Positions 21,489-49,583 of a stretch of DNA of 64,000 nucleotides are shown in pieces. Position numbers and translations under genes: made by a program. Source of the stretch: Pelomyxa schiedti (taxonomy: Eukaryota; Protista; Evosea); NCBI GenBank assembly GCA_020536535.1, contig JAHLWZ010000171.1, positions 1 through 64,000 of the forward strand, read 5' to 3'. The notes beneath the pieces were generated by a model. The model saw only the letters and a list, made by a program, of their open reading frames with translations. It ran no database searches and was not told where the DNA came from. How positions within the stretch are numbered: position 1 is the stretch's first letter; each line of letters starts with the position of its first letter.

Positions 21489-21580
21489 TTTTTCCTTCTT
21501 TTTTCTTAAAAGTCCTTGGTTTGTGCACAAATTAAGTTTATTCTGCTTCGTGGAATTCGTCTAACAACGTTCCTCCTCGT

Positions 21581-24500
21581 TTAGGAGGAAGAGGAAGTGG
21601 CGTCGTCTGGGGTGTTTCGTTTCAAAATGACAAAGCCTTCCAGTGTGGGATTAAGTGGAGTATCTGTTTGGGTGTTAGTGTTATTAGCGGGTTTATGGGT
21701 TAGGGAGGTACAGTCGTCGGTAGCAAGCTCAGCGCGGTCGCCGTGTCCCAGTAGGACTGGTGTTGTGTGTGTCTGGAAGCCTGAGGGAATGTTAGGCAAT
21801 GAATGACCCAACGGGAAAGAACCTGTGATGGCTTTTGGCCGGCCGGCTTGCCCCGCCAAATCAACGGCAAGACCAACGCGTGCGGCTGTTTTTATTTGTC
21901 TCAACTCGTCGTCAAACGTCATCAGCATCCTAGGGTACATGGCAACGGCCATACTAAATAGTATGTAGTGTGATTGTCCAAGGATAACTGAGAGATAAAT
22001 AAGACAGAAAAACACTGTACAGTAAGTGTTACTTGTTTTCATGTCGAGGCAAGAGTGAATGACTGCCAGCAATCCGGCCATAGCAACAGGATTCATTAAT
22101 GTTCTATCACTGTGAAATGGGCTAAGAGTTACAGTTCCTTTTCCGAGGTGAAGAAGTCCTTGAGCTAATCGAACCTGATTTAAATTAGAGGTGAAAAGGA
22201 ACCCTGTTCAGACACACAGCGAAGAGAACACTCGGTTCCTTGTTATAGTAGTTGGCGAGGTGTTGCAGCATAGAACCCTCACGGCTATTATTGGTACCTG
22301 CTCCCACAAGTCCAAGGGCAAAGATGGCTGGGAGCCACATTTCCTGATCGCTATCATGTGTGAGCTTCGAAAGAGTATCCATAATTGAGATTTGTGGATT
22401 TGAAACACTCAGTAGCCCGAGTGCCAGAGGAACGGCTCGTCTGACAGCAGGGTCCCCATACCTATTAATAAAGATTTTAACTTCACTCTAAACATACTGG
22501 AGTCGGCTTACTGCAGAAGATGGTCAAAAGTCCTGGCAGCCATAGCCGAACCAAGCTCCTCCCCCATGGCAATTAAAGCAATTCCGAGAACGGCCACTCC
22601 TTGGGGGTTGGGTCCAGGAGGTACCTCCGCTCCTTCTTCTGCGTGCTCACCACAAATTTGCAACAATTGTTGCACCTTCAAAACGTTCCCGGAGCCCGCA
22701 TAGGCACATGTGGATATAGTAACAGTTGTGTATTTCCCGAGTGATCCTTGAAGGACTTTGGCAAGTTCTAGTGCTACTTCAGCAGTATCTCCTTTTCCTA
22801 CAGTAAAATTAGAGGTCGCCAAAAGTTAACTATGCAACCCAGGTATAGAAGGCCGAGTCCTACTGCTATAAATCTGGAGTATGTGGAATTTGTCAAGGGT
22901 TCTCTGGCGTCAAGAAGGCGTCCCATCAAAGCGTCAGTGATTTGGAAATTGGCAGTTCCAACAAACACCATACCAAGAGCCAAAGAAATGACTCCAATTA
23001 ACTGGAAAAACAACGATGAGATAACATATTTAAAACCCTTTGGCATACTTCAGGATTATTCATTGATTTGTCCACCAGGCCTAAGAGTAACTCCATTACA
23101 TCGTCTCTAGCGGTTCCAGCATACGCCAGACCAATGCCCATGATGGAACCCAAACGAAGGTTAACCTGTGGGGAGTCAACATGCTCCTGTAGAAGGGCAA
23201 AAGCAGGATCGAATTCATTTCTCACAGTGCAGTTGACAATACCTGTAAGGTCCATTATGTGCGGGTAAGGAAAGTGGTAAATCCAACCAATTCCGAGAAG
23301 AGCGCCTGCCTTTATGTACGGATCGGCAGTATAAAGGTATTTATCCAGCTGAGAAAGGCCTTCGTCAACATCCCACATTAATATCATTCCCAGGGAAGCT
23401 GCAGCGCTCATCATGCCATGGTCTTTATTTTTGAATATCCATTTCTTATCTTTTTTGTATTGGTTAAGGGTACGAAATGAAGAGGCTTTGCCTTCTTGGG
23501 TAACCAGAGCGTCTTTCCCAGATGCAACATTTACAAATGCGTTGACAAATGTTGAAGCGAGATTTGATCTGGCTGAGTCCACTGTGGTGCCAAGCGTTGA
23601 CCCTGACGCAAATCAACAGACAAGACCAAAAACAAGGGAATGTACTTGTTTCAGATCCGGATTTGTAAACCTCTTCTGGATCCTTGGGATTTGAGACTCC
23701 CAGATCCGTCTGTAAACTTTGGAAGAACTCGGATAGTTGCGCATTTCTTAGTATGGAGTTTATAGCCTCACATTCCTCGCTTTCTTCAGGAAGACCATGG
23801 ACTTGTGTGCTGCATGTTCCTTGTCTTGCAAGTATGAAAGCTAATTGCTTCTTCATTGGCCTATGTGCCCGTCAGATGAACATTGTGAAGAACCTCCCAT
23901 ACACGGAGTCACATTGTTGGAAAATCTGTTGGATGATTTCCATCTCCCCAAGTTTGAGGCAAAGCTGAATTGCGCGAGCGTAGTCGCCAGCCCGCCTAAT
24001 TGTAAACAATTACTCGAGTTCTGATATTTCAAGTGGGTATTCACCGGTAGATCTCAAGTGAAGTTCGATAAAACACTTTGTCTTCAGGTTCCGGGTAGTA
24101 ATTTGCACATGAAATTAAGTATAAACACACTCTTTCATACTTCGAAGGGATTTTAGTATCAACGTGCTCTAAAATCCGTTCCAACTTCCCAATCTGGACT
24201 ATGTTAGATTAGGTGTTCAGGGAAAGAAGATGATGACCTCCATCAACAAATCACAGGCATCCGGCTCTGCATTGTGCATCATATGAAATGGTACAATTAT
24301 ATCAGCTAGTGTCAGAAGCTCTGAAACGTCCTCTTCATTAGCCAACCGTTTATTGTACTCGTCGCCTATTTCCCCAGCTAGATTTCTTTATAGGTGTTAA
24401 TGCTGTTATTGTCAGTGAACATGTGTTACCTGACATATTCATGACCCCACGACTCCAAATCCGTTAAGTTGCCTTGCAGCTTGAATGACAGACTAGCATT

Positions 24501-42081: not shown

Positions 42082-42237
42082 AAGGAGTTGCGATAAACGC
42101 AAACTCCACTCACAAAAATTACACTGCTGGGCTCCCTTGCGGGATCCATATCGGGTCTCTGACCTGAGTGCTAAGTCAGAAGCCACGACAGCACACCAGT
42201 CCTTTTTGATCAACGGTGTGCACAGTCAGGTATGTAT
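42082..42237 (-). ncRNA. U1: Variant U1 snRNA (5' AUACAUACCUG)
   Basis: Minus strand: AUACAUACCUG; helix H ACUGU/GCAGU; SL1 loop GAUCAAAAAG; SL2 loop AGCACUC; SL3 with GCAA loop; Sm site AAUUUUUG; terminal SL4; about 156 nt; ACCCATAA at -62. Confidence 0.88.
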
Positions 42238-42291
42238 GAATCGAATTACTGTTTCCCCAGCGCAGAAACTTCCCGGAGGGTCCTGGGACAG

Positions 42292-42314
42292 TTATGGGTC
42301 ACAGCAACCCATAA
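42292..42314. promoter_or_regulatory. Bidirectional snRNA promoter: two inverted ACCCATAA (DUSE-like) elements
   Basis: TTATGGGT at 42292-42299 and ACCCATAA at 42307-42314, lying 62 and 63 nt upstream of the two U1 starts; fits the Dictyostelium upstream sequence element in consensus and spacing. Confidence 0.8.
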
Positions 42315-42369
42315 TCGTCAGGCGAAACACCGTACCCTTGTTTCGCAGTTACTTGAGATCTCCAATCTC

Positions 42370-42531
42370 ATACTTACCTGGTACTCACAGGCACTGATCA
42401 ATAAGGGTGTCTTGTGTATCAACATCTTTTCTCTTGCACTCTGGGCAGAGGTGTTGGTATGAGTCTCCGCAAGGGGATATCTAGTACACCATTTTTGAGA
42501 AGCCGAGGTCTGCGAAATTCGCAACCTCGCT
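42370..42531 (+). ncRNA. U1: U1 spliceosomal snRNA (canonical 5' end)
   Basis: AUACUUACCUGG; helix H GUACU/AGUAC; SL1 loop GAUCAAUAAG; SL2 loop UUGCACU; SL3 GCAA loop; Sm site AUUUUUG at 42491-42497; SL4; about 162 nt. Confidence 0.93.
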
Positions 42532-45287: not shown

Positions 45288-47056
45288 TTACTGGTTCTTG
45301 CATTCTGGGGGTGGTGCTGGTGCTCCTGGTGTTGAATCTGGCGTGGACCCAGTGGGCGCAGATGGGGAGAAAAGGGATTTTTCCTTGAGAGGTTTCCCGC
45401 GCCTTGCCTTTTTTTGAGTGAGAACCTGGGTACTACCAAGAGAAAGGAGAGAAACTCACGACTTGTGGGGCACATCTTGGCCTCTTGGATTTGGGTCCTC
45501 CATAGTGCCGAGGCATTGCCTTTTCCTCGTCCTCTTCGTCGCCCTCGCCCTCTTCGTCTTCCTCCTGCTCTTCGCCTTCGTCATCATCTTCCTCATCTTC
45601 GTCATCGTCATCACTGTCTCCTGGTGGGCCCTCTTCATCACTCGCAGTGCTTTCAGACACGACTTCGCCCAAATACCACTTCAGGGCATTGGGACATATA
45701 TCATCCTTGAACTGTATTCCGACTGTGTGCCTATTTAAGTCGAAAAAAAAGGCTTGGGGGAAGAAACCTTCTACATCCAGGCTTCGTTGTTCTTCTTCCT
45801 GCTCAGTGATTATCTATGAATGAAGGAAAGGAAATATGATCATTACCAGGGGCTCAGGATCACCTAGTAACGCTGGCAATGGTGTGAAGAACTCAAAGAA
45901 AGAGGGTCTTGGGGCTTTCATAATAGCAACCTTCCCCTTTGCTTTCTTCCTGGAGATAATTTAGAACGGAGAATTTCGGGCTTTAAAAAGGGAACCTCCG
46001 CGTCATGACAGTGAGGTCTTTCCCATCTTTCCAGTTAGGTTTTGCGCTACAGGACGTTACATCCTAACATTAAAAGTCGGACAACCTGTCTGCATGGTGG
46101 AATTGAGATTCTGGGTCCTCTGCAGATTCAAAAAAGAAATAGGACTTGAACAGTGCAGCATCAGTAAAGAATGGGTTTGGAGCAAAAGTGAAAGTTAATT
46201 TGAAACCGCACTGAAGTGTTTTAGGGAATGGAGAATTGGGAAGGAAAGGGATGCAAACCAGGTATCGCTCTTTGCCATCAATAATAGTAGGGTTTTCCTT
46301 TGGTAAATTCTCAACAGAAATATCTTGCAGGAAATCCAAGGCTTCTGGATCGTGAGGTGACAAGTGGGAAAGCTGGCACAGCGTCTCGTTGTGAAGAATA
46401 GCTTTCCGCCAAAACTGTGGTATGCCTTTACCTTTTTATTTCCAGTCACTTTGTGGTCCTTTTTTTTAAAAAAAAAAAAATACATGGGGCAGTGGGTGCA
46501 GAGGCATCAGCCACAAACCCGGCACATTGTTCTTCACTAGGTTCTTGATCTCCTTTCACAATTGCACCTCGCTGTAAGGGAAGGGAATTTTTCGGTAGAA
46601 AGCATTCTTGGTTACCTTATCAAAGAGTGGCTTGGCCAACAACTCATACTTATGTTCCAATTGCTCTTGTTCTTCCCGTAATTGCTTCATAAGTTTCGCA
46701 TGTTCGTCCTTCACAATTCTTTATAAGCTAGATGCCACGGATGTTGAAAAAAAAAAAAAAAACCTCATAAAATGCACCCACAAAATCGTTACCTGAATAG
46801 ACCGCAACGCGTGCAACCGTTTCCTTACATCGTTAGACAAGTTGTCGTCCAGAGGCTTCTTCGTCGCCGCAGCCGAAAGCGGGAACGCGGGCAGCACAAG
46901 CGAACCTGGGGCAGAAAACAGCGACGCTGTCGGCGGTGCTGCAGCAGCCGTCGTGGCGCTCGCCGCCGTGGCCACGGTGCTGGTCGCGGCTGAGGACGAC
47001 GAAGAAGAAGGCGTAGCCGGAACAGACGTGAAGAGACCTGATGGCTTGTGTGACAT
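45288..47056 (-). CDS. NAP1: Nucleosome assembly protein 1
   Basis: VRKRLHALRSIQ; LEHKYELLAKPLFDK; GFKLTFTFAPNPFFTD; PNWKDGKDLT; acidic tract; C-terminal PECKNQ* (like the CKQQ prenylation motif). Confidence 0.9.
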
Positions 47057-47176
47057 GCTGCTGCTTAAGGCCGATTTAATTAGACGGAAGGCAATTCCAC
47101 TTAGGGGCGGACAATAAAACTGTTGTTTATACAAAAACGTGTGGAACTGTCCAAAAAAAATCTGTTGGTGAAGTGA

Positions 47177-47380
47177 TGCTCAATACATGACGTGGAAGGT
47201 CACCATGCAGAGCACAAATCTACCGGTTTATGAATCTGCCACAGACATGACCCGTTTCCCGCGCATTTAGGGACCCGAACAAACGGCGCCCAGGCTATAA
47301 TCCCGCCACTTGCCAAAAACTGGGTCGCAGCTGAACCAACCTGAGCCATCCCGTGGTGCGGTAGACTTAAGGGCTGTGGT
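47177..47380 (-). ncRNA. Putative structured non-coding RNA of unknown family
   Basis: AACCCATAATC element at -62; extensive G-U-containing helices on the minus strand; 3' hairpin; downstream T8 tract at 47153-47160; intergenic. Confidence 0.6.
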
Positions 47381-47434
47381 ACCAATCACAGGTTTCTCTG
47401 CCGCATTCCGTCTTGCACTTCCCTGTCGTTTGGA

Positions 47435-47442
47435 TTATGGGT
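47435..47442 (-). promoter_or_regulatory. DUSE-like element ACCCATAA
   Basis: Shares the 11-mer AACCCATAATC with the canonical U1 promoter. Confidence 0.6.
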
Positions 47443-47512
47443 TCCGAAAAGTAAATCACCAACTTCGTGGGGGGTTTCGCTGAACAATCGGTGTAATTGG
47501 GAGCGCTCCGGT

Positions 47513-49583
47513 ATGCAACCTGTTGCCATTCCTGCGAGAGTGGACGTGACTGGATCACGTCGTTTAGCTTTGGTTTTCGGTGCAGGGTTTTTGGTGGTGC
47601 TGTGTGCCGTCATCATTGGGCCCACTGCGTGCCCAGAGGCCGCCACCTCGACGCACTACTTCGCGTACGAATGCGACAACAACTCCCACTTGTGGGATCC
47701 AGACAATTGCCACGGTGTCCAGATGTCGAATGTGAGTGTGCAATTGCCCAATTGACACAGCCAACACCCATTTTTGGCCTAGACATTTGTTATTTGGCAA
47801 ATTTAATACCTGAACTAGAGCACGTCACACTGGGTCAAGGTTTTACCGTCAATAGACTTGTTTAATCGATTTTGGATTGTTACTGCCACCCCGTATTATA
47901 AAGATTATACAAACCAAGGCATGGATAGATTTTTTTTTGTCCCCCTTCTAAGCTCCACGAAGAAGAAGACATTAGACAGGACATGATTATCAATGTAAGC
48001 TTGTCTTATAGAGAGGCATCTTCCACTTGGAGTGATTATGTGGTGGGCCAAAGTGTGGAAAGTGAAGTTTCATGTCCAGTTGAGGTTTAATTGCATGTTT
48101 TGTTGAATTTGTAACAAATATGTTACTCCAGCTAGTTCAGGAGACCAAAGGTGGGTGTATCAGCATCCCTCTCATAGTTGAGGTACTCAGAAGAAATAAA
48201 GAAAAATCAATGACCCTCAAAAGCAAGTTGTGAGACATCCTGAGTGGCTCATAAATGTAAATTTTGTTGACCCTGGCTCATTCATTGGCGATGTCAAGTT
48301 TTCGGTACTTGTGAAAAATGCTCCTTCTTTCTAAGACTGCTGTAGTTTGCGACAGGAAACACCTCATATTCCATGATGCAGGTCCCCTTCACTTCTCTTG
48401 ATTCTTCTGATCCGTTGTTAGTTGGCCATCAATATTGTATTTGTAGGACTGTCAGCTGTGATAGTTATAATAACTGTTGTGCATATGCGGAAAATTAATT
48501 TGATGCAGTGGAATTTTGATCAACGGTTAAGATTCTTGGTAATAAAGAAGCCTAATATCTGAACAGTTTTCTGCTTGCACTGGCTGTTGGTCTTCTATTA
48601 TTTGACAGTAGTCTTTTTCTATTATTTGGAAGTTTGTGCTCATTTGAATCCAAAGATCCCTTTTACTCTATGCGTTTTCTTGTTGCCAGCTGGTTTTTCT
48701 TATTTCTCGATTCCGTATTTGGTGCTTGCTTCAGTACAATTCTTCTGTTGTATTGGCTATTTTCCTTTGAGAAAGCACGCAAGGTAAAAGCCTATCACAA
48801 AAATGGCAGGTGCTCAAACTGCTTGGCAGAGTGGGAAGAAACAGTCTACTTTTAGTATAGGCATGAAGCTCGCTTGTGCTTCACTTTTCTTCGTTTTCGT
48901 GGTCATAATGTATTCCTGGAGAGAGTGTGTAATGTGAAAATATTTTCCACTCGTTTACTTACACATTAGTATTGTGGACAAAAAAGATCCCATATTCGGG
49001 ACCACCTCAACGATGTCTGGTGCCTTGGTTTGGTCACCCTTCTTCCTTCCCGCAGCTAAGTAAAACTAGGCTTTCATGGTTCTTGGCATTGTAATGTTTC
49101 TCCTGTGTTCTTTTTGGGCAATAATTCTTGGTGTTACGGGACTTTCCGCTGCACTAAAAAGGAAGTCTCCAATAGTTAGGTCACTTCCATTACCTTTTTT
49201 TGCCAAAACTAATTGAATGCAGATTTATATTCCTTGGAATTCCTTCCGTAGTTGTGGCATTGTCTGAAATAGCTGCGCTTTTCGAGGTAGTTTTTAATCC
49301 CAAGGAATCAGGTAAACCCTGTCCATATTCCGCAAACTTATTCTAAGGCTATGCAGCCACCGAGTACCTTTACTTCCTTGTCATCAAGAATGTGTTTGTT
49401 TGCCTTGTCACCTACGGGCTTCTACCTCCACATTCCTTTATAGCCTCCCACACCCAAAAGGTAGAGGCAGCACAAGAGGAAGAAGAAAACGTGGCCGAGA
49501 TGAGAACCCACTTGGTACCCACAACAAACAGTATCAACACCAACAAAACCCAACACAATCCCACGACTACAACAACAGAATAG
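47513..49583 (+). CDS. TMEM181: TMEM181/Wntless-like membrane protein
   Basis: RVDVTGSRRLALVF..IIGP; WNFDQ; DPFYSMRFLVASWFFLFLDSVF..ILLLYWL; many short exons. Confidence 0.7.

Follow-up and report, generated by a model that had tools for sequence, protein, structure and literature searches.

Between positions 47,153 and 47,442 of the 64,000-nt stretch of Pelomyxa schiedti DNA analysed here (hereafter the window), the minus strand had been predicted, from its letters, to carry a structured RNA of about 200 nt behind the promoter element of an snRNA gene. On one side of the locus lies a minus-strand NAP-domain gene (NAP1) and on the other a divergent plus-strand gene that starts at 47513, raising the question of whether a separate RNA gene sits in this gap and, if so, to which class of RNA it belongs. 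The evidence laid out below shows that the candidate is a real orphan small non-coding RNA gene that falls in no described RNA family. Archamoebae are poorly explored for non-coding RNA, and we set the locus against the whole 52.4 Mb P. schiedti assembly of 5337 scaffolds (PMC8887013). Of the two neighbours, NAP1 is a multi-exon gene whose NAP domain was confirmed with Pfam; the first exon of the plus-strand gene had no Pfam match, and its name, TMEM181, is that of the original prediction. The window also holds a PKS open reading frame of 2707 codons, residues 2100-2700 of which match an NCBI Pelomyxa schiedti protein at 100%; this neighbour has no close orthologue that could be used as a synteny handle. 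The features discussed throughout are these:

47433-47443, minus strand: DUSE-type upstream element AACCCATAATC, with its CCCATAA core starting at -61
47404-47415, minus strand: possible proximal promoter element CAAGACGGAATG, -35 to -24, picked by eye in aligned upstream regions
47380, minus strand: transcription start and RNA 5′ end (A), from the template-switch-oligo junction of four contigs
47160-47380, minus strand: 221-nt RNA, from the contigs and their empty flanks
47369-47380, minus strand: 5′ leader ACCACAGCCCUU, nt 1-12, unpaired in the minimum-free-energy and centroid structures
47216-47368, minus strand: predicted Y-shaped 5′ domain with a long arm and a second arm, its closing helix pairing nt 13-22 with 156-165
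47213-47219, minus strand: Sm-like heptad AUUUGUG, flanked by the closing helix on one side and the 3′ hairpin on the other
47177-47214, minus strand: predicted 3′ hairpin (-12.8 kcal/mol, z -2.35)
47153-47160, minus strand: T8 tract, a probable Pol III terminator, with the RNA 3′ end at its first U, 47160
47107-47110, minus strand: separate NAP1 mRNA start, where a contig of run X3 ends at 47109 and continues into template-switch-oligo sequence

The promoter element was found where it had been proposed, at 47443 to 47433 on the minus strand, and is the same element that precedes snRNA genes. The identical AACCCATAATC 11-mer is found ahead of the U1 gene on the plus strand at 42370, and a closely similar box stands upstream of the minus-strand U1 gene. 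Allowing one mismatch, motifs of this type occur six times in the window against 1.35 expected, a number that none of 100 shuffles reached; other DUSE-like matches in the window lie inside or beside protein-coding sequence. To our knowledge, DUSE promoters are known only from non-coding RNA genes. Across the P. schiedti genome, the DUSE core CCCA[TC]A[AG] was present at -58 to -68 in all 18 of the non-SRP small-RNA genes examined, and the candidate’s position, -61, is the modal one among the known genes of this set. In the SRP genes the core lies at -22 from the Rfam start, which is probably an offset of the model. The first base of the candidate’s box is 63 nt upstream of A47380; in Dictyostelium the DUSE likewise sits about 60 nt upstream of non-coding RNA genes, whether Pol II or Pol III transcribes them (PMC7919456).

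Between this box and the start, an alignment judged by eye suggests that the other snRNA-type genes share, at about -35, a stretch rich in A and T and then CG, and CAAGACGGAATG is a possible proximal promoter element of the same kind. No TATA-like box was seen near -30 of the candidate, and the other Pol III-type genes here also have no clear one. As a separate observation, a second DUSE-like box, AACCCATAAAC, marks a minus-strand locus at 21520-21701 of the window; about 215 nt downstream of it comes the ATG of a gene for a protein with an MG...-type N terminus. Some 100 nt past the predicted start of that locus lies a AAUUUGUG motif, and Rfam has no match there.

Whether the element drives a transcript could be read from public single-cell RNA libraries, represented by four runs that all derive from one sample of one study. 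The four runs contained 61-70% of the words sampled from 47150-47450. When assembled contigs were aligned to 46300-48300, each run gave one contig over the candidate, extending from 47160, 47164, 47168 or 47178 to 47384. Past 47384, all four contigs read on as reverse-complemented SMART template-switch oligo, and among the aligned bases 47381-47384 there is a single mismatch, which is what an oligo GGG abutting A47380 would produce. The A-initiated start that had been predicted is thus the observed 5′ end, at the same nucleotide in four runs.

The opposite ends of the contigs are of two kinds. Three run into the Nextera adaptor on their 3′ side, and these ends therefore reflect tagmentation. 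The contig of run X1 instead carries 25 A (in RNA sense) after U47160; because the genomic sequence reads U there, this tail is not templated. In the P. schiedti single-cell libraries published in 2023, a modified Smart-seq2 protocol was used in which all transcripts were tailed with poly(A) polymerase (PMC10579272), and from year, organism label and library type we infer that the coded runs belong to that study. If this assignment is right, the RNA was tailed in vitro, and the A25 stretch marks a native 3′-OH rather than polyadenylation in vivo.

Coverage was zero in all four runs in 47439-48300 and in 46903-46969, which argues against carry-over of genomic DNA. The transcript could also have been the 5′ untranslated region of NAP1, a result that would have undone the original prediction, but the NAP1 contig has its own template-switch junction at 47109, about 50 nt beyond the 3′ end of the small RNA, so the small RNA is not part of that leader. 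In every run the k-mer depth of the candidate’s contigs was greater than that of the NAP1 contigs, although the tool itself describes depth as a poor measure. With contigs confined to 47160-47384 and NAP1 starting separately, the claim of independent transcription held, and a discrete, independently transcribed 221-nt RNA starting at A47380 is confirmed. It is this expression, not the fold statistics, that raises the locus above chance. The two genes are very tightly packed, the NAP1 start lying only about 50 nt past the T8 tract of the small RNA.

The fold gave a more divided picture. Every helix that had been named (the closing helix, the inner helix, the long arm, the second arm and the 3′ hairpin) is present in the minimum-free-energy structure, and the fold of the minus strand is more stable than that of the plus strand by 10.5 kcal/mol. 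The further statement that the RNA folds extensively was not supported by comparison with shuffled sequences: taken whole, the RNA has a z-score of -0.53, its folding energy being equalled or bettered by 61 of 200 shuffles. Only the 5′ domain (z -1.99) and the 3′ hairpin (z -2.35) score better, though the limits of both were set post hoc from the fold. As no homologue was reached, there is no covariation to draw on, and both fold and function are without evolutionary support.

The U8 tract at 47160-47153 and the AUUUGUG at 47219-47213 are likewise both present, but for the second of these the presence of the letters and their meaning have to be separated. An Sm-like heptad occurs in 8.5% of shuffles. 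In every checked copy of U1, U4, U5, U11 and U12 in this genome the Sm site reads A-U5-G/A, from which AUUUGUG deviates. The candidate’s heptad is identical to that of human U1. The Sm-like site that had been pointed out therefore exists as a motif, whereas its reading as a mark of the Sm class is weak.

The 3′ flanks of the recognisable small-RNA genes provided a second view of class. We compared loci L015, L017, L022, L024 and L056-L082 together with 42082-42531 of the window. A run of T6-T11 ends all eight Pol III-type copies examined (two of U6, one each of U6atac, MRP and RNase P, and three of SRP). In the 13 Sm-class copies examined, which come from U1, U2, U4, U5, U11 and U12 genes, an A-rich box lies 5-25 nt beyond the end of the RNA, and a long T run is mostly absent. 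The candidate gene lacks such a box and ends in T8, so that its anatomy places it among the Pol III-type genes. The mapped RNA keeps a single U of the tract. In Dictyostelium a T-run has been read as a sign of Pol III (PMC7919456), and, judged purely by gene anatomy, the T8 tract probably acts as a Pol III terminator here. The distinction between A-rich box and T-run offers a practical rule for sorting orphan DUSE genes in P. schiedti into Sm-class and Pol III-type.

Having defined the RNA, we compared it with the known families. The original prediction had seen no hallmark of U2, U4, U5, U6, U11, U12, U3, SRP, RNase P or MRP, and Rfam bears this out, giving no family match at the locus either at the gathering threshold or at E<=10. 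Most of these families are accounted for elsewhere in the genome. U11 and U12 proper, scoring 67.5 and 58.2 bits, lie on other contigs, and the candidate has neither AAAGGG nor GUAAGGAA; RNase P is on C676 (91 bits), MRP on C811 (81 bits), SRP is present in five copies, and U6atac is at C841:53279-53397. U4, U5, U2 and U6 are multi-copy in this genome, and the minor snRNAs U11, U12 and U6atac are single-copy apart from a weaker second U12-like gene. That second gene, at C859:7899-8035, scores 41 bits, below the Rfam cut-off, has its own DUSE at -59 and the 5′ end GUGCCUUAAACC, and may be a U12 variant. A weak ‘U11’ match at C290:54746-54876 (24 bits) is a U1-type gene, with the 5′ end AUACAUACCUGAC followed by A16; this 5′ end is a variant shared with the minus-strand U1 gene of the window.

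The one canonical snRNA not found in the whole genome by Rfam (RF00618) is U4atac. Patterns built from the complement of U6atac found no DUSE-linked U4atac gene genome-wide, and weak U4-like matches on C354 and C174 are ordinary U4 variants, not U4atac. The candidate was rejected for this role: it contains no ordered complement to stems II and I of U6atac, no K-turn and no UGCUAAC, and its duplex with U6atac is no better than those of shuffles (z -0.8). U4atac was likewise not found in Acanthamoeba or Physarum (PMC2396436).

Telomerase RNA is the other family for which a gene is owed. A telomerase RBD domain is encoded at C931:32777-33290, so a telomerase RNA must exist in P. schiedti; a 2025 review of the evolution of this RNA names none from Amoebozoa (PMC12133305). 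The candidate holds no template with one repeat plus overlap for TTAGGG or TTTAGGG, and the only strings of 1.5 repeats in it would encode C-rich DNA. The telomere repeat itself was not recoverable from the assembly, which has no long arrays: the only TTAGGG repeats are two interstitial (TTAGGG)4 blocks, at C1298:7124-7147 and C1866:2659-2682, and the GGGATT arrays are microsatellites.

Three further classes were considered. The candidate’s leader slightly resembles that of U7, but at 221 nt versus about 60 nt, with no match to RF00066 and with histone genes that generally have no stem-loop, U7 was rejected. No histone stem-loop scored above the Rfam cut-off, and the H3 and H2B-like loci examined have none. 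A single H2A gene on C248 (L028, minus strand, about 1506-1540) does carry a stem-loop, GGCUUU-UCUC-AAAGCC, about 100 nt after the stop codon; a 9-mer complementary to the leader lies about 125 nt beyond it and was judged a chance occurrence. An H/ACA RNA was also rejected: an ACA sits 3 nt from the mapped 3′ end, but the RNA has no ANANNA box anywhere and its hairpin ends 11 nt before the ACA. Finally, the contigs show no joints leading from the candidate RNA such as a spliced-leader RNA would give, and Amoebozoa are not known to trans-splice.

Neither relatives nor targets of the RNA came to light. BLAST and a single-sequence covariance model recovered only the candidate’s own locus, making it single-copy, and a metagenome scan for a DUSE together with the leader gave one chance match with no further likeness. 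The complementarity of the leader to snRNAs, which had been put forward as a check, yielded nothing: against U1, U11, U12 and U6atac there was no pairing beyond that of shuffles. Leader complements are not enriched in the genome (84, versus 125 for a control), no leader targets were found near histone genes, and the assembly holds no tandem array complementary to the leader.

We also considered whether the RNA could be translated. Its first AUG opens a frame of 49 codons that takes up 67% of the RNA, with 31 nt before it, a 22-nt trailer and a G-3/G+4 context, and a 49-codon frame from the first AUG arises in only about 4-5% of shuffles. No word-sharing protein was found for it, and it is not among the proteins of this genome, though the neighbouring PKS is. 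A phmmer search of 1.84 billion representatives returned four weak, multi-stretch matches to repeat-like proteins, none of them credible. The one match that was aligned fits a short repeat unit, none of the matched proteins has a Pfam match above cut-off, and all four are taken as noise. Pfam gave no family match to the 49-codon frame itself.

Taken together, these data lead us to favour, with somewhat better than even confidence, the reading that this is a stand-alone, single-copy, DUSE-driven gene, probably Pol III-terminated, whose orphan non-coding RNA scaffolds a lineage-specific ribonucleoprotein. On this model, the DUSE box at its standard distance would drive initiation at A47380, the T8 tract would terminate Pol III as the T-runs of the U6, U6atac, MRP, RNase P and SRP genes are presumed to do here, and the U-tail would then be trimmed to one U. 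The RNA would fold into a Y-shaped 5′ domain with a closing helix of 7-10 bp, linked to the 3′ hairpin by a short single-stranded hinge; a leader of 12 nt at the 5′ end and a tail of 17 nt at the 3′ end would stay free. Most likely the RNA would act as the scaffold for a ribonucleoprotein specific to this lineage, and its leader, being unpaired, could form base pairs.

The most substantial competitor is the one that the original prediction implied, an orphan Sm-class snRNA transcribed by Pol II, with an Sm ring at AUUUGUG, a TMG cap and a leader that guides RNA processing in the manner of U1, U11 or U7. The layout resembles that of U1 and U11, the absence of a TATA-like box at -30 suits it, single copy number is shared with U11, U12 and U6atac, and the heptad is that of human U1. 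Against these points, the heptad departs from the local A-U5-G/A, 8.5% of shuffles contain an Sm-like heptad, the gene ends in T8 instead of an A-rich 3′ box, and the leader has no complementary target in snRNAs, near histone genes or genome-wide, so that we regard an Sm-class snRNA as unlikely. A different kind of explanation is that a chance DUSE-like box in the divergent promoter of NAP1 and TMEM181 gives rise to a stable but functionless upstream transcript. In favour of such a by-product, no sign of conservation came to light, the overall fold is no better than that of shuffles, and other DUSE-like matches in the window do lie in or beside coding sequence. Against it, the 11-mer is exact and sits at the modal distance, transcription starts precisely, the 3′ end is defined at a T-run, and the contigs are deeper than those of NAP1 in every run, poor measure though depth is. 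We consider a functionless by-product improbable.

A very short mRNA for the 49-residue peptide would account for a first-AUG frame that is rare among shuffles (about 4-5%) and for the A-tailed 3′ end, which fits natural poly(A). The tail is, however, explained by in-vitro tailing (PMC10579272), the DUSE is an element of non-coding RNA genes (PMC7919456), and the protein, phmmer and Pfam searches produced no credible relative, and we consider a peptide mRNA very unlikely. We consider it just as unlikely that the RNA is a strongly diverged representative of a family for which this genome has yielded no gene. That explanation draws on the presence of U11, U12 and U6atac with no U4atac found by Rfam, U4atac not being known from any amoebozoan, on the presence of TERT where a review names no amoebozoan telomerase RNA (PMC12133305), and on a single-copy gene with an snRNA-type promoter. 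As U4atac, however, the RNA fails on the order of U6atac pairing, on the K-turn and on the duplex (z -0.8), and as telomerase RNA it has no TTAGGG or TTTAGGG template and no array complementary to its leader. We treat the ‘Sm-class’ and ‘new class’ readings as possible but unproven. In its boldest form, the proposal would be that this RNA founds a new archamoebal small nuclear RNA family, with its own ribonucleoprotein and a target read by the leader, or, less likely, that it is a replacement for U4atac or the telomerase RNA; we offer this as a doubtful, speculative extension of the orphan-gene reading.

Apart from U4atac and telomerase RNA, the set of recognisable RNP RNAs in this genome is complete. 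Public data now fix the promoter, start, end and size of the candidate, which makes it a clean case for direct probing.

Compared with RNAs of known function, the candidate combines traits of several systems. It has the single copy and snRNA promoter expected of U4atac, but lacks the pairing with U6atac and the K-turn. With U1 and U11 it shares a free 5′ leader, a multi-branch domain with a closing helix, a U-rich heptad, a 3′ hairpin and a similar promoter. It differs from them in a leader that is not complementary to the 5′ splice site of either class, in having neither the U1-70K and U1A loops nor the AUCAAGA loop of U11, and in a 3′ flank of another type. From RNase P and MRP it is set apart by the lack of the P4, CR-I and CR-V cores and by 5′ and 3′ ends that are unpaired; in gene anatomy, however, the RNase P, MRP and U6atac genes of this genome are like the candidate, with the DUSE located roughly -61 to -68, 3′ tails that are rich in C and A and precede a T-run terminator, and single or low copy number. 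The Class I RNAs of Dictyostelium, at 42-65 nt and with paired ends, are found in dictyostelids whereas the candidate is found in an archamoeba, and the candidate has no likeness in sequence or structure to any DUSE-driven RNA. In the organisation of the gene there is a resemblance: as in the DUSE-driven snRNA, SRP and Class I genes of Dictyostelium, the upstream element sits near -60, transcription starts precisely and the product is small, stable and non-coding, and the gene ends in a T-run as the Class I RNA genes do (PMC7919456).
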